Notes: generated from the sequence alone by a model not told the origin. A stretch of 64,000 bases of DNA from Callorhinchus milii (GCF_018977255.1 NW_024704755.1:15748001-15812000); one strand, 5' to 3'. Shown: positions 4,331 through 58,792, counted from the stretch's first letter. Numbers and translations are program-made.

Positions 4331-4391
4331 ATGACAATGTTGGCGAGTCTTGTGTTTCAGGGTGCATGTCTATTGGTGTTGATTTCCACAG
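4331..4391 (+). CDS. G1 exon 1, signal peptide (MTMLASLVFQGACLLVLIST)
   Basis: ATG, hydrophobic stretch, phase-1 donor g|gtgtat; homologous to the other leaders. Confidence 0.85.
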
Positions 4392-4544
4392 GTGTATATT
4401 CCTTCTTTACCCCAATTTGCCAAAAAGGGACATAGATTTCATAATTTTTTTGTGGATAGAATAAATCTGTGTCTTGCTCTGTGAATTACTTTGTCTCTTG
4501 CTGTAATTCTTTTTCTAATTAGCATTTGAATTTATTTCTGATAG

Positions 4545-4865
4545 TTGTTGACGATAGACTGATCAGAGTGACCCAACAGCCCGACCATGTGGAGGCAATT
4601 AGAGGCACTAACGTTACCTTCCATTGTATGTTTCCTGATGCCCAATCCAATTCGCGTATAAAAGTGTACTGGTGGAAGCTGGAAGACAATGGAAACCTGC
4701 AAGTGCAGCCGGATAAAAGAAAACTGTTTGGGTTCGACAGTGACCAAAAGAGCTTTTTTCAGCTCCTAAATGTGAGTCTCCAAGACTCTGGTGTGTATCT
4801 GTGTGTTCTCTCGCTTCAGGGGCAAATAGCAGGCAGTGGACGTGGATCACATCTGGTTGTACTCG
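4545..4865 (+). CDS. G1 exon 2, VJ-type Ig V domain
   Basis: ag acceptor, FHC, YWW, DSGVYLC, GSGRGSHLVV; 321 nt, phase 1-1, donor gtaagt. Confidence 0.93.
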
Positions 4866-5153
4866 GTAAGTCCTGTTTCAGTGGAGAACGGAAATATTCC
4901 AAATTAGATATTGTGATAAAAATTCTGAAAAAGTGTGAAGGGAGTTTTCATTAATTAAGAATATGAAACAGTTATTTTAAATTTTTATCCTTTAAAATAT
5001 ATCCTCCTGGGGGCAGGTGGGCTCTGTTCGGAGCTGAACTAGCTCCAGCATGAAATGTTTAGCAATAGAATATCTGAATCAAGATAAACCTCTGCAATGG
5101 TATCGGTAGTCTGGCTCTTGAGCCCGACGGGTCTGCAGTATTCTGGGGCACTG

Positions 5154-5720
5154 CTGATAATAATAATATTAATAATTCTTGCATTTGATATAGCGCTTTT
5201 CACGTCTTCTACACATCTCAAAGCGCTTCACAGAATATGCTGTCAAGTGAATTGACTGTATATTTGTGGGCGAAACGAGGCAGCCAATTGCACACAGCAG
5301 TGTCCCACAAACAGTCGTGGATTGAAAATGACCAATTTATTATTGTTTTTGTCTTTGGAGGCATTATGACCGCCCAGCCTGCCTGACTCATCAGTTGGAC
5401 TGGGAGAGGCAAGCGAGTCACTACGGGCAGGGAATCTAACCATTTAACTTCTGTTAATGCTACAAGCCAAAGCCCTGATGGGTACAGTTGTGTCACGTAG
5501 CTCATGCACTCTTATAATAATAATAAAATTATCCTTGCATTTGATATAGCGCTTTTTACGTCTTCTTGACATCTGGAAGCGCTTCACAGAATTGACTGTA
5601 AAGTGAATTGACTGTTTATTCGTGGGCAATTTGCTACATGTAATAGCAAATCTTAGTTGTATTATTCTTACATGTTTGGAAAGCGCATGCTTGCCCAGGA
5701 ATGTCAGGGAATGCGGCATT
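5154..5720 (-). mobile_element. Two tandem tRNA-SINE copies (one 5'-degenerate, one partial) in G1 intron 2
   Basis: Two (AAT)n-cttgcatttgatatagcgc tails at ~5160 and ~5520 plus the core sequence. Confidence 0.75.
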
Positions 5721-6500
5721 GCCAGAATTGCCTTTATTCGGATAAGATCAAGATTCCGTCTGCCATTTCAGATTAACGTTCAAAAAAATGACACTTTTTG
5801 AAACGAGAAGAGTTTCTCCTAGTGTAATAATGAACTCATTTACAATTTTACGTAGATTTTAAAAAACCTTTGTGATGTTAACATACCAAGGACCTATATC
5901 AAATGCAAGGATTTTTTTTAGAGATTTGTTTAGACCATTTCAAACTCCAAATTATTGGAGTTTAATTTTAATTTCAGTCCTAAATTAAATGCATTTAGTT
6001 AAATATTTTTTCAGTAATGAACTATTTCTTAATTTTACCGAGGAGGAATACAATAGAGCATATCAGCACTGGCTATATTGCTGTTGTGATCGTCTATGTG
6101 TCAGGAACATTATTTTCTTCAAGTTTTTTTTCCTCCAGTTCCATGTAGGGAAAAAAATGAAAAGATTCAATTTGTATTAATGGGGAGATGCAATTGGAAT
6201 TGTGTTAAACAATATTTTATTGAGTGGAGATTGAAACATTCGATGACAATGTGTGCTAGCTTTTCATGGTACTTATTTACTTTTGGGGGGATTTGTAGTG
6301 ATAAAGAATGTTTCCGATGACGCTTTTATAGTTGTTATTGATGGCGAACAAATCAATGTTAGACCTAAAGATTTTTTTAAGTACTAAGCAAATAAACCAG
6401 AATCAAAATGTAGTGAATGGAATGCTATACAAATCACAAAAGTTTAATCTCCACCAACTGAATGTAGGTTTGTTATTCTGCTGTACTGTTTGTTCTGCAG

Positions 6501-6812
6501 TTCCTCCAACTCCATTGAAGATTTTCTCCAAAGATCCTAAAATAGGTTCACCAGCGCCTCTGACTCTTGTGTGTGAAACAACTGCATTTTATCCAGAGAA
6601 TCTTAACTTCACTTGGTATAAAAATGGCACCAAAATTACATCTGGAATAAATATCACTAAACAGCAGAATGCAGAGGGATTGTATGAAGCTTCAAGCTTT
6701 GTGGAAGAGAACAAGCCTATCCAAAGTGGGGTTGATTATATCTGTGAGGTTTCTCACATCAGCCTTCGGATTCCAGAAATTGCCAACTACACAGTTCAGT
6801 GTTCTAAAACAG
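6501..6812 (+). CDS. G1 exon 3, Ig C1-set domain
   Basis: LVCETTAFYPENLNFTWYKNG..GLYEASS..YICEVSHISL; 312 nt, phase 1-1. Confidence 0.93.
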
Positions 6813-7153
6813 GTAGGACGCCAACAACCTTACTGTCAATTAATCTTTATTTTTTCACAAGAATATTTCCTACTATTAATTACAGAAAATGGTAACGTCC
6901 AATCATACATATGTTTTTCTATCAAATAAACTTAGCAATATAACCCCTGAAGCATTGTGAGACTTGTTCCTGATGTGAAAGGCACAATATTCAATGGTTA
7001 TTATTATTATTTACTATTATGTCTCTTTAATTGGGTATCAACAACAAATTACATTTGAAAAGCATCTTTCATAATCATTGGCATATTCTGCTTATAACAC
7101 TAAATGGTGTGAAGTAATGCTGTTTTACCTCTTCATTTGTATTGTTGTTATAG

Positions 7154-7258
7154 GAAATAATACTCAGTCCCATCATATGCTAATATCTAGATCTGCAGCA
7201 TTGACCGTTTTCGTGCCTTTAATCATTGGAATATCATGTCGATTAATGAAAGGGAAAG
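7154..7258 (+). CDS. G1 exon 4, stalk + TM (GNNTQSHHMLISRSAALTVFVPLIIGISCRLMKGK)
   Basis: tag|ga acceptor, g|gtaaga donor, phase 1-1, hydrophobic core then basic stop-transfer residues. Confidence 0.85.
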
Positions 7259-8959: not shown

Positions 8960-9003
8960 GTTTACACAGAAAGCTGAATGGTTGTGACATTTGTGGAGAT
9001 CAG
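8960..9003 (+). CDS. G1 exon 5, 44-nt cytoplasmic micro-exon (GLHRKLNGCDICGDQ)
   Basis: ttcag|gt..cag|gtaaag, phase 1-0; same length and start as G6 56247-56290. Confidence 0.8.
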
Positions 9004-9403: not shown

Positions 9404-9514
9404 AAAGTCCATGAAGCAATGTCTGAGACGGTGGGATATGTCCCATCTGATTTGAATTGTTCAAACAAGACCTCGAGAACATGATATCCACAGGAAATTG
9501 GAGTATGTGCCAAG
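9404..9514 (+). pseudogene. G1 motif exon A, disabled (in-frame TGA at 9482; motifs degenerate)
   Basis: 111 nt, phase 0-0; KVHEAMSETVGYVPSDLNCSNKTSRT*YPQEIGVCAK aligns without gaps to G6 exon A. Confidence 0.8.
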
Positions 9515-10035: not shown

Positions 10036-10209
10036 ACCAAACAAGTGGCAGACGGTAACGTGCTGACGTATGCAAATTTGAACCTGTCTGGCTCCAAAAC
10101 AAAGGGAAAGGGAAATCCGAAATGCAGTGACACAAAAACAGAGTATGCCCAGATACACGTGAGAAACCATAGAGCAGCAGATCAGACCACCTACAGGAAT
10201 CAACATTAG
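10036..10209 (+). CDS. G1 motif exon B with ITIM (LTYANL) and ITSM (TEYAQI)
   Basis: tttacag acceptor; TKQVADGNVLTYANLNLSGSKTKGKGNPKCSDTKTEYAQIHVRNHRAADQTTYRNQH*; homologous to G6 58139; internal donor cac|gtgaga at 10159 possible. Confidence 0.82.
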   Translation, partial: TKQVADGNVLTYANLNLSGSKTKGKGNPKCSDTKTEYAQIHVRNHRAADQTTYRNQH

Positions 10210-11561: not shown

Positions 11562-12526
11562 TAACCTATGTTAACCCTCTATATGCTCCACCTTGGTGAC
11601 ATCATCAGCAGACATGGGGTTAACTTCCACATCTATGCGGATGACACCCAACTCTACCTTTCCTCCTCTACCCTCAACTCCACGACCACCGACGTCCTGA
11701 CAGCTGCCTGTCCGACATCGAGTCCTGGACGAGAGACAACTTTCTTCAGCTCAACGTGCGCAAAACTGAGGCCCTCCTGATTGGCTCACGTCAGTGCCTC
11801 CGCACCTCAGGCGCTGACAGCATCAGCATCCAAGGCTGCACTCTCCACCTCTCAAAGCCATCAGGAACCTCGGCGTTCTGTTCGAACCTGAGCTGTCCTT
11901 TCTTCCTCATATCCGCGCCACAACTGGCACCGCCTTCCATCACCTCCGGAACATCGCCAGACTACGGCACTACCTCACCCCTCACGCTGCTGAAACTCTG
12001 GTCCACGCCTTTATCACCTCAAGGCTGGACTATGGGAACTCTCTCCTCGCCGGCCTTCCCGGCCCTCCCTCCACAAGCTGCAGGTCATTCAGAACTCTGC
12101 AGCTTGTGTACTGTCCCGCACCAGGCTTCGGGACCACATCACTCCTACCCTCGCTCGCCTCCACTGGCTTCCCATCCCCCAGAGGATCGAATTCAAGATT
12201 CTCATCCTCACCTACAAGGCCATTCACGGCCTTGCTCCCTCCTATCTCTCCGACCTACTATCCCCCTACCTACCTGCCCGTACCCTCCGTTCCTCCAGTG
12301 ACTTTGCCTTGCTTCCTCCCTTTCCTCCTTCAAGCCTGGTCTCAAGACCTTTCTCTTTGACCGAGCCTTCAGCTCCCCTCTCGACTCTCTACCCCCTCCT
12401 CACTCCCTCCCTTCCCTCCCCTCACCCTGACCATTTCCCCCTGCTCGGGTCCTGACCCAACTGTCCAGCGCCTTGGGACGTCCTCCCGACGTGAAAGGCG
12501 CTCTATAAATGAAATCTTGTTGTTGT
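11562..12526 (+). mobile_element. 5'-truncated L2-clade LINE (RT C-terminus + 3' UTR)
   Basis: [17 protein letters not shown]; later SRLDYGNSLLAGLP, LHWLP; tail gtgaaaggcgctctataaat..(TTG)n. Confidence 0.88.
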
Positions 12527-14329: not shown

Positions 14330-15531
14330 AGTGGGAATTCGGTGCAAAGGGGGAAAGAGGTCCATAATTATAAAATATATAATAGTTATATTAAAATTGT
14401 GAAATGCAATTGTCATTGGGGACACAATATGAAAGGAGTGGACAGGCATTTCTGCAAAAAAAAGACGTAACTCTCACATAGTATGTTGCCTCCCCAGTGC
14501 CAGGGTTGAAGACATCATGGAACGGGTGCAAAACGTTCTACAGGAGGAAGGGGAACATCCAAAAGTCATGTTCCAGGTTGAGATCCATGACGTAGGGAAA
14601 AAAAGGCTGAGATCCTACAGATAGAGTATCAGAAGCTAGGGAAAAAGCTGGGTTAATAAAAGACAGCCAACATGGATTTGTTAAAGGCAAATCATGTCTA
14701 ACCAACCTGATAGAATTTCTTGATGAATTAACAGAGAGGGTGGATGAAGCTAGTGCAGTTGATGTGGTTTATATGGATTTTCAAAAGGCGTTTCATAAAG
14801 TGCCTCATAAGAGACTTGTAACCAAAATAGAAACCCATGGTATTAAAGGGACATTGGCAGCATGGATACAGAACTGACTGGGAGGCAGAAAGCAGAGAGC
14901 GTTGGTGAACGGTTCTCTTTATGACTGGAGGAAAGTGTTTAGTGGTGTCCCCCAGGGGTCAGTATTGGGACCACTGCTGTGATCGATCTATATAAATAAG
15001 CTGGACCTGGGTATAGGGAGTACAATTTCCAAGTTTGCAGATGATACTAAGCTCGGAAAAATAATAAACAGTGAGGAGGACATCGTGGAATGGGTGCAGT
15101 TATCAGGAAAAGCTAGAGAAGCTAAGATTATTCTATGGAGCAGAGACGGCTAAGAGGAGACTTAATAGAAGTTTTCAAAATTATGAGGGGATTCGATAGG
15201 GTGAACAAGGAGAAATTGTTTCAATGGCGGGTGGATTGGTAACCCGAGGTCACTGATTTAAAATAGTTGTTAAAAGAAACAGAGGGGAGGGGATTTTTTC
15301 ATACAGGGAGTTGTTCGGATCTGGAATGCATTGCCTGAGTGGGCTGTGGAAGCCGATTTGATAACAACTTTTAAGAAAGAAGTAGATAATTATTTGGGAA
15401 GGACAAGTTTGCTGGCTTTGGGGAAAAACGGTGGAGTGGGATTAAATTGGAAAGCTCTTTTCAAAGAGCCGATGCAGACTCGATGGGCCAAATGGCCACC
15501 TTCTGTGCTGCATAATTCTATGCTTCTATGA
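14330..15531 (+). mobile_element. Internally deleted CR1 LINE (ORF1 esterase fragment joined to RT and 3' end)
   Basis: CCLP.ARVEDIMERVQ (ORF1), then QHGFVKGKSCLTNL, VDVVYMDFQKAF, GVPQGSVLGPLL, SKFADDTKL; ends attctatgcttctatga. Confidence 0.9.
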
Positions 15532-15577: not shown

Positions 15578-17590
15578 TCTATCCTAATAAACACGAAATG
15601 TCTGTCTCTGTGTCTGTCTGCCAATGACACAATAACTGATTCAAGTAGATTGGCATAATTTATACCTTATTGGAAAGGCCTTTGGCGTTTTTTTTAGTGT
15701 GATCTCCTAACTCCTATCTTGATGACCTAAACAAGTTCATTACTCATGTATAGCAGTTTTGCTGAAGGTGTTCATGCAGAATTTATGGCATGTAAAATGG
15801 CTTGTGAGTGGTATCACTGAAAAACGCCAGCACTAAAAACTATCATAAAAATATTATGCAATCAGTATAATAATAAGAATAATCCTTACATTTGACATAG
15901 CGCTTTTCATGCCTTCTAGACATCTTAAATCACTTCACAGAATATACTGTAAAGTGAATTGACTGCATATTTTTGTGGGTGAAACGCAGCAGCCAATTGT
16001 GCACAGCAGTGTCCCACAAACAGTCGTGGATTGAAGTGAACAACTTATTCTTTTTTTTGTGGGATTTTTATTATCAGGCATGTATCTGTAATTGTTGATA
16101 AGATTATACCAAAATATGTTTTGCTATAAAATATGAAAATTACATCATGTCAAATACAACACTGTCTGTACGACTTAAATGGCACATTTACTCAAGATGC
16201 CCAAGAAGCAGATCCAAATTTTCAAGGACAAATCAAAAATGCCAGGGGAAAGAGAGAAGGCCGATTAAATGAAACGGAAGAACAAAGAACAGCATGGTAT
16301 GACTTGGACGCAGAAAGCCATACAAGAACCCAGCAAAATTAATGGCCCACTCAAAATACAGCAGCTGGACTTCGTTGCTGAAAGGACTGCAAGAGCACAG
16401 CAAAATGAGTTGCCCACTCAAAGAACAGCCCGCAGGACTTCGATGCAGAAAGAACTGTAAGAACACAGCAAAATAAGTTGCCCCATCAAACAACAGTTCG
16501 ACTGGACTTGAACGCAGAAAGGCATGCAAGAACACGGCAACATGACATCCAGCAGCAGCTGTGCTCAACTATGATCCAGGCAGAGACTACCCATCAAATT
16601 TGGAATGTGTTAAACATATGTGCCCTGTGTGGAGCCATGAAATGGGCAAAAGAAATTCCTTCCATGTGTTGCTTGCTTGGCCTGGTAAAACCAGAGCGAC
16701 TCAGAGGTCTTAAGGCATCCACGCTGTGGGTATTTGTGGAGAAGATGAGCCTCAGGACAAACATGTGAGTCCATCTTCATGGCAGTTCCACAGATGGGGC
16801 ATATGCTGACCTCCTTCTGGAAATTGGGGATAGCAAAATTCCAGTGGATGCAACAGATGGCCAAATTGAGAGCCCCGAAGGTTGTGGGTCCATTGTACAA
16901 GATATAGCAGAGCTCAAAACCAAAGTTTTCCCGAACCACAGCCATAACTACACAAATCATAAGTGTTCATATGAACGAGCAATCCTTGCTCCAAAAAATG
17001 AGTCTGCCAGTGAGATCAATTCCCAGCGACTCAATGACATCCCAAGAAATTGTTGCACAAGTCCATAGATATTGTTCCTTACATCGAAAATGCTGTCAAC
17101 TACCCAAGTGAGTTTTTAAACTCTTTGGAACCATCCGGTATGCCTCCGCACAAACTCATAGCTGCTAAGGAATCTAGATGCACCAAAGCTATGCAATGGC
17201 ACAAGGTAGGTGGTAAACCAGTTGAGGCCACAGGTTATACAAGCAACTATTCTGACTGGTCAGTCAAAGGGGAAGAATATATTCATTCCTCGCATCCCAC
17301 TGTTCACAAATGACAGCCAGTTTGAGTTCAAAAGGCTCTAATTCCTTGTTCAAGTGTGCTTTACCATGTCAATTAACAAGGCACAGAGGCAGAGCTTAAA
17401 GGTTGCTGACCTTTTCTTGAATACACCCTGCTCTTCCAATGGATTTTGAATGTTGGATGCTCACATGTGCATTCACCTCAATACCTGTACATCATGGCCA
17501 CGGAGAAAAAACTGCAGATGTTGTCTACACGGAAGCCTTGCAATAATTCGAGTACCTGCCAGATCACACAGTAATCCCTTTTGGTTAGTG
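15578..17590 (+). mobile_element. Internally deleted Helitron, copy B
   Basis: a|TCtatcctaataaa..tgtctgtc 5' end; ~60-bp coding repeats 16290-16545; CALCGAMKWAKEIPSMCC Zn-finger joined to helicase remnants; 3' end degenerate. Confidence 0.78.
15865..16075 (-). mobile_element. tRNA-SINE 3' part nested in Helitron B
   Basis: Tail and core on the minus strand. Confidence 0.75.
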
Positions 17591-18149
17591 TAGTTTACAT
17601 AGGAACTTCTATTGTTGATGAACTATGACCCAAACAAGCTCATTGTACATGTATGGCAGTTTTGCTTAAGGTGTGCACACAGTGTTTATGGGATGTTAGA
17701 TGGTTTGTGAGTGGTATCACGGAAATCTACATTCGATATTGAATCTTTTGGTTGCAAGTGTAGCTTCAATGGGTACAGATAGTATTAAATAATCATTAGT
17801 TTGTTTTCAGAGGCAAAGCTGAAGGAAAAACTGATGGAAACACACTAACTGCAGGGAACACGATATTCAAGGGAGTTTGTAATAATAATTATAACAATAA
17901 CAATAATCCTTGCATTTGGTACAATGCCTTTCTTGTTGGGAGGAAGTCCCAAAGTACTTCACATGGTTACTGTCAAATGTAATGACTGTATTTCTAGGCA
18001 AACACGGAAGCTCAATTATTCCTAGATACGTCCAACCAACCGGCATGAAATTAATGACCAGTTTTAATTTGAGGGATTGTTGACCAGGACACTGTGCAAA
18101 CCTTCCTTCTCTTTTAGAGTATGCCTTTGGAACTTTATTGACTAGATCC

Positions 18150-18540
18150 CTGTAGCTCTGTAGAGTCCTGTAGCACAATCGTTAAAGCACTCGCCTCAAA
18201 AGCAAGAGATCTGGGTTCTGTTCCCGCCAGGGCAAAATGTTGGGCAAAGTTCCTTATTCCACACACACCTCTGCTTACCTAGCAGTAAGGAGCAACCTAG
18301 TTGTTAGTCAATTGGCGGTTCACTTTTCTGGGGATAATAATCCTTTCAAAAGAAATAATAATTTTGTCACTCAATCCACGACTGTTTGTGAGACACTGCT
18401 GTGTGCAATTGGCTGCCAAGTTTTGCCCACAAATATACAGTCAATTCACTTTACAGTAAATTCAGTGAAGTGTTTGAGACATCTGGAAGACATGAAAAGC
18501 TCTATATCAAGGCAAGGATTATTATTATATTATTATTATC
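18150..18540 (+). mobile_element. tRNA-derived SINE (counterpart of 1306-1683)
   Basis: Head, core and (ATT)n tail. Confidence 0.8.
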
Positions 18541-18773
18541 TTGTTTAACATCTCATCCTAAAGACCACACCTTTGACAATGCATCATACCCCCAACACCG
18601 CATTGGAATGTCATTCTAGACTATGTGAGTTCAAGAATATGCACAATGTGTGAACAAGTGAAATTGAGAAATGGAGAGCAACAAATACTCTGAATGGGAA
18701 TAAGTATTGCATAATTTTAAAGATGACAGTAATATTGTTCATCTCCAAATGCATGTGCACTGCGTTTAGATTT

Positions 18774-19120
18774 ATAATAATAATCCTTGCTAGACGTCTC
18801 AAAGCGTTTCACAGAATGTACTGTAAAGTGAATTGACTGTATATTTGTGGGCATAACGCAGCAGCCAATTGCGCACAGCAGTGTCCCACAAACAGTCGTG
18901 GATTGAAGTGACCAATATTATTATTTTTTTTCTTGAGGGATTATTATCAGGCATGTATGGTTAGAAAACTTGCCCAAGGTTTTGCCCTGCCGGGAATCAA
19001 ACCTGGGTCTCTCGCTTCTGAGACGAGTGCTCTAACCACTCAGCTCCAGGACTCCCAGCGCCTTGGGATGTCCTCCCGATGTGAAAGGCGCTATACAAAT
19101 GTAATCTTGTTGTTTTTGTA
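18774..19120. mobile_element. Composite insertion: full SINE (-) joined to an L2 3' tail (+)
   Basis: Absent at the equivalent site ~1910; flanked by gtttagattt / gttggattt. Confidence 0.75.
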
Positions 19121-19809
19121 GTTGGATTTCATAGATTGATATTCTGTCCTCGGTTTTACCAGCAGATGTAAATTATCCAGCTACTCTGGCCCGCTGCTAC
19201 TCTCAGGATTTCACTGCAACAAAATATAACTATTGCTGCACTTAGACATGTTAATTATGTCAAGTAATCAATACGAAGATAGCTTTGCAAAAATACAAAC
19301 TTCTATTTTCAGGTGACAAGGTTAAATTGCATTGCCCATTGTATTTTGACAATGTAAAGTCACTGTAAAACTACTTTTTAATGATAAGTGTGTTAACCAT
19401 TGTAGATTTAATGGACAAAATTACGTCTGTATTACTTATTTTAAATTCCACTCAATTAAATATTAATTTAAGTTGATGTTTGTCATTTCGACTTTTTTAG
19501 TGTTTCACACAGTCCATCTTCTTCATGGGAAAACATTCCATTGTATCACCTTCTGTCATTAGTTAATCTGCTATAAGGTTACAATATAAGTTTATGGACA
19601 GGAGCATTCTTCTGGAGGAAATTGTTGCTGGCACTTAATGATACTCCTGGAGGCTGCAGTTATAGCAGGTAAACTAATGCAAGATTCAAAACAGTTTACG
19701 TCAGTAAACATATGGCAAGATTTTAGTTTTCATTGCAGACAACATTTAACATTCATCTTTGTTGCTAACTACACAAACCTAGTCATCATTTAAGTCGACA
19801 ACTTCCTCT

Positions 19810-19910
19810 ACAAATCCCACCCAACAAACAAAGTTAATCGATCTGAACCAAGAGGCGGTAAGTCAAACGTCACTGCCTCGGTTTTAATTGTAAGAAACTA
19901 CAAAGCCTTG
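19810..19910 (+). promoter_or_regulatory. G2 proximal promoter
   Basis: aagtcaaacgtcactgcc at ~19860, shared with other paralogs, ~80 nt before the ATG. Confidence 0.5.
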
Positions 19911-19948: not shown

Positions 19949-20003
19949 ATGTTGGCCAATGATGCGCTTCAATATCTCTCTCTCATTAGGTTGATTTCTG
20001 CAG
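19949..20003 (+). CDS. G2 exon 1, leader (MLANDALQYLSLIRLISA)
   Basis: ATG..g|gtatgt phase 1, 55 nt like the G4-G6 leaders; hydrophobic core is weak. Confidence 0.75.
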
Positions 20004-40399: not shown

Positions 40400-40490
40400 G
40401 ATCGAGGTTTGCCAACTGTTTCGGTATTTATATCACACTGGATTTGAAAAAATTTCTAAGAGGAGAAGACAGTAGAAATCAGTAAAGTTG
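40400..40490 (+). pseudogene. Relic of ITIM exon A downstream of G4
   Basis: ttatatcacactggatttgaaaa..aagaggag and downstream flank match G6 56990-57150, with a deletion. Confidence 0.7.
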
Positions 40491-46399: not shown

Positions 46400-46454
46400 A
46401 TGTTGGTGATTTTTCTGCTTCAGCAAGCGTCTCTGATAGGGATGATGTTCACAG
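46400..46454 (+). CDS. G5 exon 1, leader (MLVIFLLQQASLIGMMFT)
   Basis: ATG..g|gtgcgt, phase 1, 55 nt. Confidence 0.85.
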
Positions 46455-46619
46455 GTGCGTGTCTATAATATACCCGATGTTCTGGAAAAGGACATGGAGG
46501 AAGTCGTTTTTATGTAGTTTTATCCATTTACATAGAGAGGACTGGTCTATTTATCAAGATTTGCTCTGTGTAGCTTTTTTTGTCTCTTTCTAATCAGGGT
46601 TTATATTTATTTCTGTTAG

Positions 46620-46940
46620 CTGTTGACGGTACTGCGATCAGAGTGATCCAACTCCCTAAACATGTTGAGGCAACCAGAGGTACAAACATTACCTTCTACT
46701 GTATCTTTCCTATCGATCAACCCAATCCGCGTTTAAAAGTGTACTGGTGGAAGCACGGAAATGATGAATACCTGCAAACAAGGAGTGATAAAAGAAAAAT
46801 ATTTGGATTGGAAAATAAACAAAGAGGCTTCTTCCAACTTCTTAATGTGAGTTTCCATGACTCTGGTGTGTATTACTGTGCTCCTGTACTTCAAGGAAAA
46901 CTGGCAGGAAGCGGACCTGGATCATGTCTAGCTGTACTCG
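46620..46940 (+). CDS. G5 exon 2, VJ-type V domain
   Basis: FYC, YWW, DSGVYYC, GSGPGSCLAVL; 321 nt. Confidence 0.93.
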
Positions 46941-47069
46941 GTAAGTGCTGATGCACAAGTTTCAAATTTCTCAAATTTCAACATGAAACTAAGAATCTAA
47001 AAACGGCGGAGAATATTTTGCAATTATTTGAGAATATGAAGCCTTTACTTTGATGCTTTTTAACTATAT

Positions 47070-47379
47070 AGTCCTGTAGCTCAGTGGTTAGAGCATTCGC
47101 TTTGCAAGCGAGAGACCTGGGTCGATTCCCGGCAGGGTGAAACCTTGGGCAAGTTTCCTTACTTCCACACCCCTGATAATAATCTCTCAAAAAAAGACAA
47201 TAATAAATTTGTCTTTCAAAACAGGACTGTGTGTGGGACACTGCTGTGTGTAATTGGCTGCCGCATTTCACCCACAAATATACAGTCAATTCACTTTACA
47301 GTATATTCTGTGAAGCGCTTTGAGATGCCTAAAAGACGTGAAAAGCGCTACATCAAATGCAAGGATTATTATTATTATT
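47070..47379 (+). mobile_element. tRNA-derived SINE with intact-looking A and B boxes
   Basis: tagctcagtggtt / ggtcgattcc, core, (ATT)n. Confidence 0.88.
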
Positions 47380-48363
47380 GCATCAGTATTTAATTACCTG
47401 CATACCAATTATAATGTCACATGCAAAACACACATATATTTCAATTCAACTTATTTTATCAACTTAGCTCAATTAATTTGCGTTTGTTAAAAGGTTGAGC
47501 TGAAGGTCCATATGCAGTGTCTATTTCTTATTTACAGGATTATATTTTGGAGATTACATTTATAATGTGTTGTATTAAAATGTTATGCATAGTCACCAGC
47601 ATTGACATGCAGTTGACTGAGAGACTGTGTCTCTATTTTATTCTGTCAGGATCATTGAAATACAGGTTTGGCACATACTACAATAAAGATTCCAGAAATT
47701 TACAATTAAGGATCTACATGGTGATTGGTTTGAAAGGCAAATGTTATTACCTCATAGACAGGTTCAACATATCCCCCTCACTATTGTCTATTTAGTTCCC
47801 ATTAAATGTAATATCAACTTCAAAATATTTCTCCCGTTTACTAAGGTCTGATAGAATGAAGCTTATCTGCAGTAGCTATATTTATCTGTGAATGTCTCTG
47901 TAGCAATGGAATTGATTTTCTTTCCCGACTTTCAATCTGCAACTACAGGCCCAGCTGGTTTATTACTATTTCCATCGTTCTCAGTTATATGTACCTGAAT
48001 GATTCGATTATATATTCAGAAGCAATAAATATATATATTCAGAAGCAATAAAAATTAGCAGCCCTCTTCTAAATTATGGAAAAAAATATTTTACTGAGTG
48101 GTAATTCAAACATTGTACTTCAGAGAGGATTGATACGCACAAGCTCTTTGTGTTACCATTTGCCACTCCCTGATAATAACTCATTCACAATTGAAAACGT
48201 TGATAGATTCCGGTGCCAAAGTTATAAGTTAACCAAATAATAGTTTGGAAAATATAAATGAATAAACCAGAATTAAAAGTGTTGCAGAGAAATGAATTGG
48301 ATACCTATCAAATTATATGATGTGCAATATGATATACTAGAAAAAGTAGTAAACAGTAAGGAA

Positions 48364-48666
48364 CACTGGCGGGTGGATCGGTAACCCGAGGACACTGATT
48401 TAAAATAGTTGTTAAAAGAAACAGAGTGGAGATGAGGAGAAATGTTTTCACACAGCGAGTTGTTGAGATCTGGAATGTATTGCCTGAAAGGCCGGTGGAA
48501 GCCAATTCAATAACAACTTTTAAGAGAGAAGTGGATTAATATTTGGGGAAGACAAGTTTGTAGGGCTATGGGGAGAGAGTGGGGAGTGGGATTGAATTGA
48601 ATTTTCAAAGAGACACGATGAGCCAAATGCCTCCTCCTGTGCTGTATAATTCTATGATTCTATGAT
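48364..48666 (+). mobile_element. CR1 3' fragment
   Basis: FTQRVVEIWNVLPE..; ends attctatgattctatgat. Confidence 0.85.
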
Positions 48667-48752
48667 AAACAAACTATGTTCCTAAATTCCTAATGTTAGT
48701 GCCCCCAACTGAGCGGAAGTGACTTGATTCTGGTCCATTATCCATCCTACAG

Positions 48753-49064
48753 CTCTGCCCACTCCACTGAAGATTTTCTCCAGGGTTCCCGAAAGATTTT
48801 CATCTGCCTTTCTGGTACTTGTGTGTGAAACTGCCATGTTTTACCCAGAGAATCTCAATCTCTCATGGTACAAAAATGGCATTGAGATATCATCTGGAAT
48901 AACTATCACTAAGCAGCAGAATGCCGAAGGACTGTATGAAGCCTCCAGCTCTATAACAGAGACACAGACTGTCAGAACAGAGACAGTATATACTTGTCAA
49001 GTATCTCACCCCAGCCTCCAGAGTCCAGGAATTGCCAACTATACGGTTAACTTGTTTGATGCAG
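48753..49064 (+). CDS. G5 exon 3, C1 domain
   Basis: LVCETAMFYPENLNLSWYKNG..YTCQVSHPSL; 312 nt, phase 1-1. Confidence 0.92.
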
Positions 49065-50213
49065 GTAGGAAACCAACAATCTCATTGTCTGCTACATTTT
49101 CACAGGAATATTTCCATATATTCATCAAATTAGTTATATAATTTGTTTCATGAAAATTCACTATAAATCTGGAAAATAATCTGGAAAATAATTAAGTTTT
49201 AAAGACTTATCTACATGACTTCCTTTCCTGAAGCTATTCGCCAGTGGTCTTAGTCTCAAATAATTTTAACTACTCATAAAGAAACAATTCCTAATTTTAA
49301 TTAACATTGCAAATCAGTCATGCAAGTAATGCATAGTCAATCCGCTTGAAAATATATTCTATGAAACACTTTGAGACGTCGCAACAAAATGACAAGAAGC
49401 TGTATCAAATGAAAGTTTTTTTATATAATGTTAAACTTCCATGGAATTACATTCCAATTAACTCATTTAAATTATTTAATCTGCACTTGCGGTTTGCCTG
49501 ATCGTGAGAGTTGCTGAAAGGTGTCATAAAATACAGCTGCCAGACTCTCCGCAAAGTAACTTGTAAACTGTTTTCAGTCCACAGCAAAATTATTGGTTTA
49601 CTAAATGGACAGGTACATTTTTGACTTTATTTCATATAAAGTTGGTGCTGTTGGAGTTCTTGTGTCTAAAATATTTTTCTTTAACTGTCACATTTAGTTC
49701 AAAATCCAAAATGGTGCATGCCTTCATGCTGTTTTGCAGGAACACATCATAAATTATTCACCTCTCAGTCTAGGCATTCAGCTATGTTTTAGTTGAACGC
49801 CTTCACGATAAGCGCGAAGTACATAAGAACATAAGAAATGCTAGACAGAAAAAGACCAAGATCCATCTAGTTTGCCTTCCACTTTCCTGGCGGTCGCATG
49901 CACATATGTCCCGAACTACCTATGTACTATATCCCATAATGTTATTTCCTAAAGGAAAACTATCTAATCTGTATTTGTAACTTCCTTTACTTCTGAAATG
50001 GTCTTTGGAACTACCCTTTGCATTAAATCCTATGCAGCACTGTGAGACACTCTCCCAACGTGAAAGGCGCTATATCATATGTCAGGATTACAAGAACATA
50101 AGTCTCACTGTTCGAAACACTGATTGTCCACCACGGTGGGATGTCTTCCCGCTGTGAAAGACGCTATACAAATGTAATTTTGTGTTTGTTGTTGTTCTAT
50201 CGTTACTTTGTAG

Positions 50214-50325
50214 GTTTTGATGATAAACCTTATGCTATTGCAATATCCGATTTACATTGAGCATGTTACTAATCCTGATCTTGGCCATCATCATTGTGGA
50301 CCATTTCAGAAAAAACCCTCTTTAA
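50214..50325 (+). pseudogene. G5 exon 4, TM exon with a 1-nt deletion (as read: GFDDKPYAIAISDLH*)
   Basis: Adding one C at 50248 restores ..AISRFTLSMLLILILAIIIVDHFRKNPL*. Confidence 0.82.
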
Positions 50326-51784
50326 AGGTAACACATTCATTGCTTTAAGTAACCATTTGGTGTAATTTCAAAGTATTTGCAGTAGGTAGAATAACTGTCG
50401 GTTCAGAAATGAGAAGTATATGATCATCGTTGTTAAAATATTCTGTGACTTTATTTTAGAGTCAGCTAGAGTATGGATACCTTAGGTATTAATGTGGCTC
50501 AGCAAGTGCTGGCAAGCCACTGAGTCGGAAACAGAATCGAAGCCTCACGTCGGGACTTTGAAGTCTCAGATGATACAATGCAATTCTGGGTGGGGGTCAG
50601 GGGGTGTTTACATTATTGGAAATGTCATCATTCGAATGAGTTATGCGAGACTGAGGTATCCTCTGTCTGTTTAGATGGTGTTTGTCTGATGGTTATTCTT
50701 TGACGTTATTCTCCGTTTTTATTTTTGATTTATTTTTGCTTGTCTGTCCTGCCTGCCTATCATTTGAAGACAAGTCATAATCATTTACAAGTAACATTTA
50801 TCTTATCAGATCTTGCCAGAATTGAAATTCTAACATATTTTCAATGAAGTAGCAATATGACCAATGAAACAGAAATTGTTGCGGAAACTCAAAAGACATT
50901 TTCTTAATGTAATTGTGTTTGATAATAATTCAATTAATTTATAGCACAGCCCAGATAAATGATGTCCTTGTCTGACTTTATATGAAAGCAGTAATTTGTG
51001 AATCCAATATTAGGATTAATAGATTAGCAAGATTCATAACTACATTCTTTTATTATAGGGAAAGAGATGAAAAGTGCCTGACTGTAAGAAGACAGAAAAA
51101 CTGAGGGAAAGTATTGAAAACGAATCGAGAAAAAAGGCGGAACAAATAGTCTGAATGGCAGCAAGCCATCATTATTGCTACTCATCTTCTATTTACTTAA
51201 ACTGCATCTGATAATCCTGATATATGATATAACGCTTTTCATGTTGGGAGAATGTCTCACAGTGCTGCATAGGATGTAATGTGAAGGGTAGTTCAAGTGC
51301 ATCTTTTGGTGAACTCTGTCTTTTGAATGTTTTTCTAAGCTCTGTGCAATACTGCGTGTCAAAGAGAAACATGTTTGCAAATGTGTAACGATTGTTCAAA
51401 AAAATGTAAAGATTACTTATAAACATCCGTGGAGTGTGATATCTAATATTGCAGATGTTGTACGGTCCATCTCGTTTTTTATTAATTATCATGAATTATG
51501 ATAAAAAATGTATTAGCTAACTAGACGTTTCAATTTATTCAAAACTGAATGTTCTCTCTTCATTAAGGATGACATTTTTTTTACCAGTAATATGTGCTTT
51601 GCTAATACCAAATATTCCAGTCTTCCCTTTTCCTTTTCTAATGTACCACTCCTGTAGGTGAAAGGGAAAGTTGTTTGGCAGTACATGTGTTTTATTTGCT
51701 TAAAACACCATCATATGCTGCACCTGAAAAGGAGAGATTGTGGGAAAACTGAGAAAATCAATGCCCTGGGCCAATGGAGACACT

Positions 51785-52560: not shown

Positions 52561-52615
52561 ATGTTGGCGATTCTCGTGTTTCACCGTCTATGTCTAATAG
52601 GAATAATTTCTAAAG
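52561..52615 (+). CDS. G6 exon 1, leader (MLAILVFHRLCLIGIISK)
   Basis: ATG..g|gtttgt, phase 1, 55 nt. Confidence 0.85.
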
Positions 52616-53174
52616 GTTTGTGGTTGAACAACTCAATTTTCTGATAAATAACAAAGATAATGTATTTCTTCTAGTTATATCCATTTATATAAAATCCACT
52701 GTCAGCCTTGCTCAGTTGATGATACTCGCATACTCGAGCCTGAAAGATTATGGGTTCAAGCCCTACGTCAGGACTTAGAACTCATATAACCGAGGCTGAC
52801 ATTCCATTGCAATGCTTGGACCATAAGAAGTGCCGTGAAGAGATGTTAACAATGGAGTTTCCGTCTGCCTGTTCAGGTGGATATTTACAAATCCCTTGGC
52901 CTTTTCATAAAGAGAAGGGTGTTTCCCTCAAATAAGGTTGGTAATGCATATCATGGTTGTTTGTGGTAGATTGCTGTACGCAAATTTTCTGCCTCATATT
53001 TAAATATACAGTTAAACATTTTGCAGTATATTCCGCAAAGCACTTGGAGAGGTGTTTGCAATATTAAGGACGCTAAATCAAAGATGATTAATTCTGTCTC
53101 TATCTTGCTCTGTGTGTATATATCTCATCATTGTGTTTTTGTTTGTAATCAATGTTTTAATTTATTTCTGGCAG

Positions 53175-53495
53175 TAGCTGGTAGAGCTTTGATCGAAGTG
53201 ACCCAATACCCCGAGCACCAGGCTGTAAGCAGAGGTACAGATGTCAAGTTGTACTGTGCCTTCCCTTTCCCTGACCCCAACTCATATGCTAAAGTGCACT
53301 GGTGGAAGCAAGGCGAGAGTCAATACCTGCACAGGAGGCCCGATAAGAGGAAAATATTTGGTTTTGACAGTAAAGCATGTGGTCTATTTCAACTCCTTGA
53401 TGCCACTCTCCAGGACTCTGGAGTCTATCACTGCACACTGAGTATTCAGGGGGAAATGGCAGGAAATGGAACTGGATCACAGCTAACTGTATGTG
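53175..53495 (+). CDS. G6 exon 2, VJ-type V domain
   Basis: As G4 except one residue (F for L); 321 nt. Confidence 0.93.
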
Positions 53496-53901
53496 GTAAG
53501 TGAGAATACAAGTTGTTTCAAGTGTAAAAATCTCAAAACTCTTCAGTGCCTTTATTATGATGTACAGTGAATATTTTACAGATGCAAACGAGGTAGTCAT
53601 ATGCACAGAACCAGGTAAATAATAGATATGTATTTTGGAGGCCAGTTGGCCAGTTGGACACCAGTAAAAACTTCCTTCTGTTTCCAGTAATGCCCCGTTA
53701 CATTTACTATATTTGGTGTCAACTAAAAAGGCAATCATAGTCTTGGTTAACATTTCATCCGCAAACAACACCTTCGACAATATAGTATAAAAATATAAAA
53801 TACAGATAAGACACAATTATAGTGGCATCAAAAACAGAGTACAGTTTAATCCCATAACTGAACCCATGTAACCAGACGTTTCTCCGTTATTTGTTCTACA
53901 G

Positions 53902-54219
53902 TTCCTCCAGATCCGCTGAAGATAGACCGCACAGCTCCTCAGAAAAATTCATCCGCAACTCTGACCCTTGTGTGCAAAACAGCTGCATTTTATCCGGAGA
54001 ATCTGACCCTCACTTGGTATAAAAATGGCACTGAAATTACAACTGGGATAATTACCACAAAGCAACAGAATACGGATGGGCTTTATGAAGTTTCCAGCTC
54101 TTTGGAGGAGACGCAGCCTGTCCAGAGTGGACTTGTTTATACCTGTCGAGTGTCCCATCTTATTAAGCAGACTGCAGAAATTGCTTATATTGTTCCTCCT
54201 CCAGAAGCAGAAAGTAAAG
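53902..54219 (+). CDS. G6 exon 3, C1 domain with GC donor
   Basis: Protein identical to G4 C1; ends aaag|gcaagt. Confidence 0.88.
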
Positions 54220-55553
54220 GCAAGTGGATTAGAGTTAACTATTCTTACTGGAATGTTTCCTTCTTTTATTCTGCATCTTAAAATATAGCCATACAATTTA
54301 CTTCATGTAAAATACCTATAATAACAATTAATAATGCTACATTTGATATAAAGACTTTCACGTCCGGAGAACATCTCAATATTTACAGGTTATATTGTAT
54401 TTTGTAGGCCAACACAGCAAATAATTTGCCCACAACAATGTTCCATAAATAGCCATGAATCGAACGACCAAGTTAATTTGGGGGATTGTTAACCAGAGCA
54501 ACTTCTCTTTTCGAATCGTGCCATGGCAAGTGAATTAGTTAACTATTCTTAGTTAAAAACTATTTTTATAACCTTCTATTAATCCGCACCATAAATTATA
54601 GGCATAATGTTTGCTTCATTTAAACTCCCTATGATAATAAACAATAATCCTCATATTGGATAGAAGTGGCTTTCAAGATAGGAGGATGGCTCATAGCGCT
54701 TCGCATGATGTACTGTAAAGTGTAATGATTGTATTTTTTAAGTGAACACAGCGGACAACAATGTCCCACAAACAACAATAAATAAATTACAAATTATAGA
54801 TGGGGGATTGTTGGTCATGTAACAGGAGAATTCTCTTCTCTTTTAAAATAGTGTCACGGTATCTATCATCCACTTAGGAAATATGAGCTCGAATTAACAT
54901 CCATCCTAAGGACGGTATATATAAATATAAAATACTCATGTTTTAATGGAGAATACATTAACTGCAGGGAATGTAAAACAATATAATTTGCCTCTGGAAA
55001 TGTTAAAATCTCATCCTTGAAAGATTTAACTTGTAATGAATGTGAGTAGGAATTGTTTATTTCCATCCTATGCTATTTGTACGAGTTAATATTATGTATC
55101 ATGTATGTTTTCTCTCAATGGGCTAAATACAGTTATTTGTAAATTGCCCTCAAAGTATATCTGCTCGCAGGCTTATCACAATTATGCTTAGTTCAGAACT
55201 GAACTCAGTATTTCCCCTGAAGCCAGAGCTGAGTTCGGGAGTTGAGTCTATGGGTTACACACACAGGAGCTGTATTTCACATTACCATGACACAGTTTAT
55301 GGAATATTAACAATACAATTAACAACGTATCTGCCTGTCCCTGTCCTTTACACTTCGGTAACAATAAATTAATGACTTATTTTAAACAAGTAAACCGTAC
55401 TCTGCGGGTGAAGGAAGAGACAAATCACTGAAATGTCCCGGTTACCATAATAGAACAAACATGATCGTGAAATCTCCTGAACTGTTTCTTTTCTGGTGAT
55501 GTGTGTACTTATGGAGATTATGAATAATTCTCAACTCTCATCTTTTTTTGTAG

Positions 55554-55643
55554 GGAATCCCAATAATTATTTAAGGATTGCTGGTTGTGTTGTAGGTGGA
55601 CTTGCATTTTTAGTGCTTTTAATAATCATTGGGAAAATGAAAG
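55554..55643 (+). CDS. G6 exon 4, TM (GNPNNYLRIAGCVVGGLAFLVLLIIIGKMK)
   Basis: ttttgtag acceptor, g|gtaaga donor, phase 1-1; 19 uncharged residues after the Arg. Confidence 0.9.
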
Positions 55644-56246: not shown

Positions 56247-56290
56247 GGTTGCACAGGAAACATAATGTATTGGACCATCGTGGCGAGCAG
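56247..56290 (+). CDS. G6 exon 5, 44-nt micro-exon (GLHRKHNVLDHRGEQ)
   Basis: ttttag..cag|gtaatt, phase 1-0; homologous to G1 8960-9003. Confidence 0.85.
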
Positions 56291-56387
56291 GTAATTATAA
56301 TATTTATCCAGTTTGATGTTTCATATCTGAAGTGTGATTAATAAAGTAAAACTTTTTTTTATAATTGAGAATATTGAGAATATTTTG

Positions 56388-56770
56388 AAGGTCTCGTAGC
56401 GCAGTGGTTAGAGGCACTCACCTTACAAGCGAGAGGCACGGGTTTGATTCCCGGGAGGGGCGAAACCTTAAGCAAGTTTTGTTACTCCAGTCCTCTGTTT
56501 ACCTAGCAGTAAGTAAACACTCTTGTTATTTGACTGGCGGATTACTTTCCGGGAGTAATAATCGCTCCAAAATGTTTTTAAAAATTGGTCACTCAATCCA
56601 CAACTGTTTGTGAGGTGAGTGACTGCATGTGCTGTGCGTAACTGATTGCCGTGTTTCGCTCATAATATACACAGTCAATTCACTTTACAAAATCTTATGC
56701 GAAGCGCTTTGGGACAGCTAAACCATGTGATAAGGCACTATATCAAATGCGGGGATTATCATTATATTGT
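56388..56770 (+). mobile_element. tRNA-derived SINE (longer subtype)
   Basis: Head, core, tail. Confidence 0.75.
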
Positions 56771-56958
56771 AATGTATTTCTTGCAAGTCATTACGTTTTG
56801 ACTGTGCAATTCAAACTATGTACACACTGACACGAGGCACCTGTGCAATGTACCGATCATTTGCACACAGCATCACAGGCAAGGAAACTGGAAAACTTCT
56901 TGAAAAACATTCCCAAATATTTGCGTAAAAATTGAAAGTTGCATATTGCGATTTACAG

Positions 56959-57069
56959 GGGGTGCAGGGATCAGATGCTGAGACGGTGGCTTATGTCACA
57001 CTGGATTTGAAAAGATCCAAGAAACATTCAAGACCTAAACATCAAGAGGAGAGTACAGTGTATGCACAG
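56959..57069 (+). CDS. G6 motif exon A, ITIM (VAYVTL) + ITSM (TVYAQ-V/I)
   Basis: tttacag acceptor, 111 nt, phase 0-0; donor gtagag is weak, and read-through stops at 57103. Confidence 0.85.
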
Positions 57070-58138
57070 GTAGAGCTGAAAAACACAAACTCCAGATATA
57101 AATAATTTATCCAACATCAATTATTACCAAAGTAAATAGTTAAAATTGCTTCAGTTGATAAGTTTAAGTTTTTTTTATGTATTGCTGCATTCAGTAATTT
57201 CCCTCCTCAAATCTTCGAGCATCCTATCCAGCACTGAACAGACCTCACATACGGTTACACAGATTGATGTGTGATCCTGGAGCCCAGGCAATGAATAGAG
57301 CAACAGTTGCGTCTCAATGGACGGCCGAGTGGAACCCCTTTTAGTGTATCCCTTTTGAGCAGGACAATTAACAATGGCCACACTGATTAATTCTGCCTTC
57401 TCTCCCACACCAAACTCCGCATACCAATCCTCGCTACACTCCACTGACCCTCTCTCTACCTTGAACTGGTCTATCTTTAAATAGACGTTAAAATCCCTAC
57501 CTCTTCAATAGGACAGAGGAATATAAGATGATGGGAGACTTTGACAGGGTGGAGAAGGAAAAAATATTACTGCGCACTTTGGAACTGGAGGGCATGGTTT
57601 TAGAATCAGAGTTGGGCGGTCCTGAACAGAGATAAGGAAAAACATTTTGGTATAGAAAGTGTTGGGAATGTGGAATTATCTACCACTCATTTTTTGGGGT
57701 GGCAAATAAGTACACCTTCAAACAAGAATGGGCAAATGGTTAAGAGACAATAAAATTGAGCATATTGGAAATGTACGCGAAATACTATATATACAATATG
57801 GGGGGAAACAGAATATGAGATCAGAGATAGGATCTTGGATCAACGCTCATATGGGACCTTAAACACCAGCTACACTGGAATAGCCGTACCAGTTATAAAT
57901 CTATGAAATTTGCTCCCTTTGTTTGGGCCACTCCCTTCACCAGCATTGTCAAGCATTTTGAGGCATTCTCCCGATGTGAATAGTGCTATTTAAAATAAAA
58001 TTGTACTGTGTTGTGGCAGACGGCTGCAGAGTACAAATGCAGCTCTCTCCGCATGAATCTGAGATGGAGATTCTAGTTAGTATTTTGTAGGTTGTTTTCA
58101 AGTTTCCCATCAAGAGTGAACAAAACCAATCATTGCAG

Positions 58139-58255
58139 ATCAAGCAAGGGGTTGCTCCAAACAAGCTGACATATGCTGCTCTAGAATTTTCGGAATCCAA
58201 GAAAACAGGAAAATTCAAACGTATCGACAAGGATACCCAGTATGCTGAAATACAG
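58139..58255 (+). CDS. G6 motif exon B, ITIM (LTYAAL) + ITSM (TQYAEI)
   Basis: In-frame acceptors at 58091 or 58139; donor cag|gtgaga; read-through stops at 58301. Confidence 0.82.
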
Positions 58256-58756
58256 GTGAGAAACTACAGAAGGACAGGGGAGATGTCACAAGGCGCACGC
58301 TGACACAATAATGGAAGTCACATTTAGTGTATCTTTCATAGAGACTGGTTTCACATGTATGTCTGTCTTCCACTGTTATCCTACTTGCGTACCATTGTTT
58401 ATTTCAGCCTGGCTCAGTTGTTAGTACTCTCAGCTAGGGCTGAAATCTGAGATCTATCCCCTTTTGTTTGTTTGATTGCAGAACAATTCACATTTTTACC
58501 AGTCTATGCATTCAGAAATTATCCAACAACCCTCTTTAATTTTCTGTGATTAGTTTAAGGTTGTGCCCGCTACCTAATCATTGGCTGACTATTGGGGAAA
58601 AAATGTATCAGTGTCCATTCAACAAAATACTTAAAATTAAAAAGTTTCCCTGCTTTACTTAACATTTGATTAACACCCACCATTTCATATGAATATATAT
58701 TTAGCACCTACCAAATAATATCATTATGCCTAAACATGGCACATTTTTTTTTACAG

Positions 58757-58792
58757 GTCAATCGAGGGGCATCCAGTAACAGGCTGATGTGA
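58757..58792 (+). CDS. Probable G6 terminal coding exon (VNRGASSNRLM*)
   Basis: Strong (T)n-acag acceptor, phase 0. Confidence 0.5.
   Translation, partial: VNRGASSNRLM

Follow-up and report, generated by a model that had tools for sequence, protein, structure and literature searches.

Six tandem genes in a 64,000-nucleotide stretch of the genome of the cartilaginous fish Callorhinchus milii (GCF_018977255.1, NW_024704755.1:15748001-15812000; "the window" below means this whole stretch, and positions are counted from its first letter) probably belong to a lineage-specific, SIRP-like family of paired receptors that has an antigen-receptor-like ectodomain. The genes, here termed G1 to G6 in their order along the window, combine a variable (V) immunoglobulin (Ig) domain of VJ type and a C1-set domain with transmembrane (TM) segments and cytoplasmic tails of two opposite types, inhibitory and activating. 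New here are a tract over which the ectodomain exons of an activating-type and an inhibitory gene have been homogenised, the position of activating-type genes beside inhibitory genes in the family tree, an activating-type TM, R-x16-[D/E]H, that is found across elasmobranchs, and a cluster that spans at least 400 kb.

An open-reading-frame (ORF) listing, self-BLAST and an all-versus-all ORF comparison identify six V+C1 Ig gene copies in the window, all on the + strand and all head-to-tail, between positions 4331 and 58303. Gene models were built with the paralogous proteins as guides, and a small 44-nt cytoplasmic exon (GLHRK...), which shifts the phase from 1 to 0 and was locatable only through the paralogues, completed assembly of the full models. 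The exon order of each intact gene is leader, single-exon VJ domain, C1-set domain, and TM/tail exons, and all splice junctions of the spliced models are AG/GT, with V and C1 exons both of phase 1-1. In all five intact genes (5/5), V-through-J is a single unbroken exon of 321-324 nt. By Pfam, the first Ig exon is V-set (E 3e-9 to 8e-7) and the second is C1-set (E 4e-13), and both matches pass the gathering threshold. A tblastn search with every exon type found no extra copies in the window other than an orphan 5' fragment of a V exon (35075-35158, +), located between the leader and the V exon of G4. The results bear out two claims of an earlier sequence-only reading of this DNA: that the window holds six head-to-tail paralogues with common exon phases, as the canonical junctions of the spliced models now show, and that these encode VJ-type V and C1-set domains, as both Pfam and domain matches in the PDB indicate.

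G6 and G1 encode tails of the inhibitory type. G6 (exons 52561-52615, 53175-53495, 53902-54213, 55554-55643, 56247-56290, 56959-57069 and 58139-58303, +; 365 aa) has two exons that each carry an immunoreceptor tyrosine-based inhibitory motif (ITIM) followed by an immunoreceptor tyrosine-based switch motif (ITSM), VAYVTL/TVYAQV and LTYAAL/TQYAEI, and G1 (exons 4331-4391, 4545-4865, 6501-6812, 7154-7258, 8960-9003 and 10036-10209, +; 338 aa) has one such unit, with ITIM VLTYANL and ITSM TEYAQI. The tyrosine-to-tyrosine spacing inside a pair is 23-25 residues. A + strand scan for the tandem ITIM-ITSM motif returned the three G1 and G6 tail exons and two matches outside any exon, which we take as chance. 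Past the G6 stop codon lies a remnant of a third ITIM/ITSM exon (58809-58871, +; SKKIGKPYRQE-stop-..YAEVQMRN), and G1 contains a decayed first ITIM exon (9404-9484, +) that reads ..ETVGYVPSDL.. and then meets an in-frame TGA. The TM of G1, ..MLISRSAALTVFVPLIIGISCR.., resembles the activating type in its 5' half (xISR; ..LISR) and the inhibitory type in its 3' half and tail. Thus the spliced models confirm ITIM/ITSM-bearing tails in both genes, and the label "hybrid" that had been given to G1 is a fair one, since its TM starts activating-like and ends inhibitory-like.

G2 and G4 encode TM segments and tails of the activating type. In G2 (exons 19949-20003, 20193-20516, 22572-22883 and 24093-24208, +; 268 aa, C-terminus ..SRFILSVLVLLLLTIIIVDHFRIILLQR) and in G4 (exons 34513-34567, 35630-35950, 36358-36669 and 37888-37991, +; 263 aa, C-terminus ..SRLAFGVFIILLLAVVIVDHFRFFHL) the terminal exon encodes ..ISR, 16 hydrophobic residues, DHFR and 4-6 further residues, with the stop codon within the same exon. 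The cytoplasmic tail is short, 8-10 residues (10 aa in G2), and the TM/tail sequence of G4 ends ..AISRLAFGVFIILLLAVVIVDHFRFFHL. The resulting TM motif, R-x16-DH, is common to G2, G4 and, in its TM frame, G5, and its Arg sits approximately 6 residues into the outer leaflet of the TM. About 2.4 kb downstream of the G4 terminal exon, a 23-nt segment (40428-40450, +) is 95.7% identical to an ITIM exon of G6; the match is weak (E 4.6e-5, from one of nine queries), and, as a possible relic of an ITIM exon, it may point to descent of G4 from an inhibitory gene.

The two remaining copies are broken. G5 (exons 46400-46454, 46620-46940 and 48753-49064, with a TM exon from 50214; gene span 46400-50327, +) carries a 1-nt deletion in its TM Arg codon at approximately 50249 (TCC-GA-TTT, vs. 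TCC-CGG-TTT in G2), and a stop follows at 50258-50260, three codons past the deletion in the correct upstream frame. Rescue through another splice acceptor is ruled out: upstream of the TM, its frame is interrupted by three stops and lacks an AG. Because the frameshifted Arg codon leads into a stop and the TM frame is closed upstream by these three stops, G5 is either the source of a soluble V-C1 product or a pseudogene. G3 (28553-31891, +) is a pseudogene with decayed leader, V and C1 exons: ATT replaces the ATG start codon at approximately 28553; the V exon is reduced to its 3' part (28681-28821), with a stop, with the region of the second cysteine deleted, with both cysteines gone and with an interruption by a repeat; and frameshifts and a stop disrupt the C1 exon (31596-31891). 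The tblastn search with every exon type found no G3 TM exon in the window. The exon models accordingly uphold the description of this group of genes as two with an Arg-bearing TM and short tail, one frameshifted and one decayed.

Signalling modules of opposite type are joined to nearly identical ectodomains in G4 and G6. Ectodomain identity among the window paralogues is 48-61% in both domains and the ratio of nonsynonymous to synonymous divergence (dN/dS) is 0.2-0.6, with the exception of G4 and G6, which are 99% identical in V and 100% identical in C1 at the amino-acid level, with synonymous divergence (dS) of 0.03 (V) and 0 (C1). Window-by-window alignment delimits a homogenised tract of 1.2 kb with sharp limits that comprises the V exon, a 407-bp intron and the C1 exon (35608-36808 in G4; 53153-54352 in G6; both +). 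Within the tract identity is 97-100%; upstream it is 60-67%, and downstream it drops from 85% to 76%. We attribute the tract to recent gene conversion, or partial duplication, involving an activating-type gene and an inhibitory gene. Near-identical ectodomains on opposite-type signalling modules, which are a mark of paired clusters, thus occur in this window, as do both other marks, long tails with ITIM/ITSM and short tails behind a basic TM.

The family extends well beyond the window. When 1.84 billion representative proteins were searched with a profile, 252 matched at E <= 1e-30, and from the best 150 of these 252, together with matches from an earlier homology search, we obtained 78 sequences having both family domains. 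All family members with sampled names are chondrichthyan; non-chondrichthyan matches are multi-Ig B7/butyrophilin-like proteins (lungfish, coelacanth, bichir and frogs) or amniote SIRPs. One C1 exon is present in all window genes and in nearly all family representatives. In a maximum-likelihood tree of the 78 family ectodomains, the activating-type TM label has at least six placements, and every gene that carries it lies beside inhibitory forms. The supports are 100/100 for G4-G6, 99/88 for G2 with the inhibitory P0006 (XP_007902824), and 97/87 for G5-G1.

The activating-type TM is conserved across cartilaginous fishes. R-x16-[D/E]H is also found in five elasmobranch genera: Heterodontus, Scyliorhinus, Chiloscyllium, Heptranchias and Carcharodon. 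For G2 vs. a Heterodontus member (P0043), 19 of 22 TM residues are identical, and ectodomain identity is 47%. Because this TM is common to Callorhinchus and elasmobranchs, the activating/inhibitory split predates the holocephalan-elasmobranch divergence, approximately 420 Myr (million years) ago (PMC3964593). The TM is more strongly constrained than the ligand-binding part, a pattern that fits an intramembrane partner.

Three other Callorhinchus members map to MU249845.1 (18.1 Mb), at 15.21, 15.47 and 15.59 Mb, all in the same orientation, and the window overlaps none of these three fetched loci. The cluster therefore extends at least from 15.21 to 15.61 Mb of this record, i.e. over at least 400 kb, with the six window genes a slice of it. 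The earlier description of a six-gene cluster holds for the six genes, which are real, and fails for the limits of the cluster, which is far larger and belongs to a family common to elasmobranchs. Within 10 kb on either side of five family loci, the only neighbour called, if any, is a further Ig-domain gene. One such neighbour, beside P0028 (L002 1-4546; MU249845.1, approximately 15.23 Mb), has a 268-aa product with matches to V-type Ig domains only and is probably P0111, a 268-aa protein in which a V domain, with no C1 after it, leads straight into TM and ITIM/ITSM tail; P0111 is either a true variant that has V alone or the product of a model from which the C1 exon was skipped. A more conserved sub-lineage (P0073, P0077, P0148 and P0114, from Hemiscyllium, Chiloscyllium, Hemitrygon, Hypanus and Callorhinchus) has a canonical GNGTGTxLxV J motif. 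Its three elasmobranch sequences combine a "WWIY" TM with a tail that is rich in lysine and arginine and lacks ITIMs; in Callorhinchus P0114 the tail is basic and no TM is evident. In two Chiloscyllium species this sub-lineage shares a chromosome-sized record with other members of the family.

Public annotation of these loci is generic, as had been predicted, and in part incorrect. Names in use are SIRP-like or PTPNS1-like, SIRP-beta-like, NCR3LG1-like, tapasin-related-like, Ig lambda-like and CD276. In a homology search a spliced model is 97% identical to UniRef A0A4W3H454 (LOC103185940, Callorhinchus milii), which places the window in the elephant shark, a cartilaginous fish as the sequence-only reading had it; LOC103185940 is G6, and its public model (P0001) reads through the C1 donor into the intron and consequently lacks TM and tail. 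Two public Gnomon models of Callorhinchus, P0036 (XP_007904055) and P0004 (XP_007902905), are chimeras in which one family gene contributes its tail or its C1 domain and is fused to the next gene. Public models at these loci are thus incomplete or chimeric and need manual curation.

To place the family among known receptors we compared domain scores, PDB matches and tails. On the family's V and C1 models, family members score 82-163 bits per domain, and SIRP, B7-like, Ig, TCR and UrIg2 domains score at most 53 bits. Among PDB entries, for which single-domain rows alone are informative for the V profile (titin and Robo top that list through summed weak matches), the best single-domain match of the V profile is a TCR-beta V domain including the J region, at approximately 43 bits. 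The V domain ends in a J-like motif, G-x-G-[ST]-x-L-x-V, and in the V domain of G6, the one aligned, GNGTGSQLTV aligns with the J regions WGQGTLVTV and FGKGAKLTV. Among PDB entries C1 matches human C-lambda best (46.7 bits), with UrIg2 C3 second (38 bits). For the whole ectodomain, the leading PDB matches are UrIg2 (9dmx_A, 2.8e-21), Ig chains and SIRPα (3.2e-17, third-best), with CD276 at 1e-12; UrIg2 is first because three of its C1 domains are summed, each scoring only 20-32 bits with a single sequence. An AlphaFold model (pLDDT 81) shows two beta-sandwich domains. Foldseek against the PDB ranks Fab light chains first for it, and these dominate the list so that it does not discriminate among SIRP, UrIg2 and TCR.

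These comparisons bear directly on whether the genes are simply chondrichthyan orthologues or co-orthologues of SIRPα/β, tandemly expanded, so that an already characterised paired family would stand here under its usual automated name. Many members are indeed labelled PTPNS1-like or SIRP-beta-like, the order of a VJ-like V domain and then a C1-set domain is that of SIRP, and SIRPα stands high among the PDB matches, as noted. Moreover, bona fide SIRPα scores 27-53 bits with d2 and d3 on the C1 model, d3 reaching 44-53 bits in four of the five full-length SIRPα tested (29.6 in the fifth). The tails also agree: the G6 tail aligns with possum SIRPα over 77 residues (32 bits), colinear with both ITIM/ITSM pairs, so that the two-pair tail characteristic of SIRP is present here, and the G1 tail aligns with mouse SIRPα at 30.8 bits (shuffles 13.9±2.1, maximum 20.4). 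A database search with the G6 tail alone, with a word index too coarse for SIRP tails, matched only the Callorhinchus paralogue P0036. One skate model, P0038, is V-C1-C1. However, its two C1 domains hardly differ from one another, as would be expected after a recent duplication, and the family otherwise has a single C1 in place of the two of SIRP. SIRPα d1 scores 10-27 bits on the V model, vs. at least 82 for family members and approximately 43 for TCR-beta V, and a search seeded with reptile SIRP gave only amniotes among its best 120 matches. The activating TM has an Arg in R-x16-[D/E]H, whereas SIRPβ has a mid-membrane Lys in its TM. We therefore regard a SIRP orthologue as quite unlikely.

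A second possibility is that the genes encode not receptors at all but V-C1 ligands of the B7-H6 (NCR3LG1) type that co-evolve with NKp30, in a shark B7H6 expansion. Flajnik and colleagues are said to have reported such an expansion in 2012, and B7-H6 itself has the V-C1 layout, tyrosine motifs in the tail and gene clusters in Xenopus. Some elasmobranch members are labelled NCR3LG1-like or CD276 homologue, and CD276 is among the PDB matches. Against this, a J-like motif alignable with TCR and Ig J regions closes the V domain; the B7/butyrophilin-like V-C1 sequences read, from lungfish, frog and coelacanth, lack the J motif and score only 7-27 bits on the V model and 26-42 bits on the C1 model; B7-H6 is absent from the best 60 PDB matches; and a charged TM with a short tail is a hallmark of receptors, not of ligands. 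Ligands of this type are very unlikely.

Taken together, the domain scores and PDB profile searches reveal no one-to-one orthology with SIRP, B7-H6 or UrIg at the domain level, in line with what the sequence-only reading had proposed. To judge from sequence, membership appears to fail for SIRP, for B7-H6, for UrIg/UrIg2 and for the rearranging receptors. SIRP was rejected by ectodomain, which has a single C1 instead of V-C1-C1 and whose domains do not group with d1, d2 or d3. B7-H6/NCR3LG1 was rejected on the J-like motif and on the low scores of B7-like V-C1 proteins, a comparison made with proteins other than human B7-H6 itself. UrIg/UrIg2 was rejected on a single C1 followed by TM and tail, vs. 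VJ and at least three C1; rearranging Ig light chain and TCR, on V and J that are contiguous in one exon; and NITR, considered through its known architecture, on a second domain that is C1-set by Pfam and by its C-lambda, UrIg2 and SIRP matches.

The organisation of the genes suggests how a paired-receptor family of this kind would work. The six genes are a 55-kb slice of a tandem multigene cluster of type I membrane receptors whose ectodomain, one non-rearranging VJ and one C1-set domain, has the layout of a single antigen-receptor chain. Inhibitory members (G6, G1) carry one to three ITIM-ITSM units, the phosphorylated tyrosines of which would recruit the tandem-SH2 phosphatases SHP-1 and SHP-2. 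In activating-type members (G2, G4 and formerly G5), a single terminal exon takes the place of TM and tail, and signalling would pass through an adaptor that has an immunoreceptor tyrosine-based activation motif and a membrane Asp, of the FcRγ or CD3ζ type; the outer-leaflet position of an Arg suggests an adaptor of this type. Ectodomain exons are exchanged or homogenised among activating-type and inhibitory neighbours, and therefore both receptor types would see the same ligand, while genes are born and die, as in G3 and G5. The sequences themselves establish the gene structures, domain types and motifs, the conversion tract, how the family is distributed and that its TM is conserved; from the motifs we infer activating and inhibitory functions and an "innate" cell type, and the adaptor, ligand and expressing cells are putative.

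Several points weigh against this reading. The ITIM/ITSM tail of G1 requires skipping of the decayed exon described above. The link from charged TM to adaptor would be by analogy only, because the Arg is near the outer TM boundary and because inhibitory G6 also has an Arg at the TM edge. The likeness of the tails to those of SIRPα may be convergence, as tandem ITIM-ITSM arrangements are common in unrelated receptors. Full-text literature searches, which covered the subscription literature incompletely, found no published description of a VJ-C1 paired family; the "undescribed" status suggested for it earlier is not proven, and an earlier naming is possible. Finally, exact-sequence look-ups gave no record for the G2 model or for P0001, the read-through model of G6. 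The last point, the incomplete public models of the window, the dead exon in G1 and the two broken copies of six (G3, G5) would also suit an array of mostly non-functional, decaying and unexpressed duplicates, in which the motif pattern has no present signalling meaning. Nevertheless, four copies have intact ORFs and canonical splice sites, dN/dS among intact paralogues is 0.14-0.60, and both the family and its TM motif have been kept since the holocephalan-elasmobranch split; an array in mere decay is highly improbable. We thus favour a lineage-specific paired-receptor family.

The window also contains repeats. A SINE-like repeat (short interspersed element) of approximately 310 bp is present in at least eight copies that are 77-91% identical to one another (5158-5367, 15867-16083(-), 18790-19058(-), 26281-26559, 33054-33360, 42637-42954, 47070-47379 and 59154-59469), and the core of the repeat matches sequence next to the white-shark family member (L003 18310-18508) at 91.6% identity, an unusually high value for this depth of divergence. 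The 5' flanks of G1 and G2 have in common a block of approximately 3 kb (2-2687 vs. 16704-19909; 87-92% identity in three pieces) that is far more alike than are the genes G1 and G2 themselves; the block may stem from recent segmental copying or be a large repeat common to both flanks, and Pfam found no match for the one ORF of the block submitted (510-806). The spacer between G1 and G2 contains a reverse-transcriptase fragment of a LINE (long interspersed element; RVT_1, 5e-8; 14611-14874, +). Repeat-derived, proline/serine-rich ORFs are found at 11645-12452, in the same spacer, and at 28771-30165, where they interrupt the V exon of G3. A long, imperfect CA/TG-rich low-complexity tract (32410-33050) gives spurious ORFs on both strands ("CVCVCV" on the - strand), and position 27125 is one N.

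Compared with known systems, the family resembles SIRP or KIR in its probable mode of action and an antigen-receptor chain in its ectodomain. SIRP is similar in its VJ-like V domain followed by a C1-set domain, in inhibitory members with two ITIM/ITSM pairs, in charged-TM short-tail partners and in the clustering of paired genes. It differs in having two C1 domains where the shark family has one, in a V domain to which the shark V is only distantly similar, in the Lys that replaces the Arg of R-x16-[D/E]H, and in gene number, the shark genes numbering dozens. KIR, LILR/PIR, the NITR of teleosts and the APAR of hagfish are similar in being tandem birth-and-death clusters that mix ITIM, charged-TM and pseudogene members and in ectodomain homogenisation among activating and inhibitory neighbours. 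NITR and APAR have J-like V domains, KIR and LILR have domains of C2/I type, and NITR have V or V plus I; to our knowledge, a membrane-proximal domain of the C1 set is absent from all of these families. TCR and Ig light chains share the V(J)-C1 layout and, in the case of the short-tailed shark forms, a basic TM residue, but the shark V and J are contiguous, so that no rearrangement is needed, and some shark members have ITIM tails.

Also known from cartilaginous fishes are UrIg and UrIg2, which have in common with the shark cluster a single-exon VJ, a split leader, a C1-set domain next and the absence of rearrangement. Elasmobranch UrIg is a secreted VJ-3xC1 homodimer made in liver, nurse shark UrIg2 has VJ and nine C1 domains, and the paper that describes them makes no mention of SIRP, ITIM or paired forms (PMC12227049). 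The cluster genes differ from both in that a single C1 is followed by TM and signalling modules and in that they belong to an extensive tandem family found in a holocephalan as well. Non-rearranging VJ-C1 genes are sought as clues to the origin of Ig and TCR, and one can ask whether this family is a membrane-bound surviving relative of the pre-RAG antigen-receptor precursor, a VJ-C1 chain with a TCR-like basic TM when activating and ITIM tails when inhibitory, the VJ-C1 layout having first served a germline-encoded paired innate system in the gnathostome ancestor. We consider this unlikely; if it were true, R-x16-[D/E]H would be the sign of a very old alliance with an adaptor. Of the published shark VJ-C1 examples one is secreted and one is long and multi-domain; the present family has the exact single-chain V-J-C1-TM layout, yet is organised as are KIR and SIRP, with tandem genes, ITIM vs. 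charged-TM members, gene conversion and pseudogenes. It would be a candidate natural-killer- or myeloid-type paired receptor system for cartilaginous fishes, in which little is known of such systems, and a test case for a common paired-receptor ancestor of SIRP and the antigen receptors.

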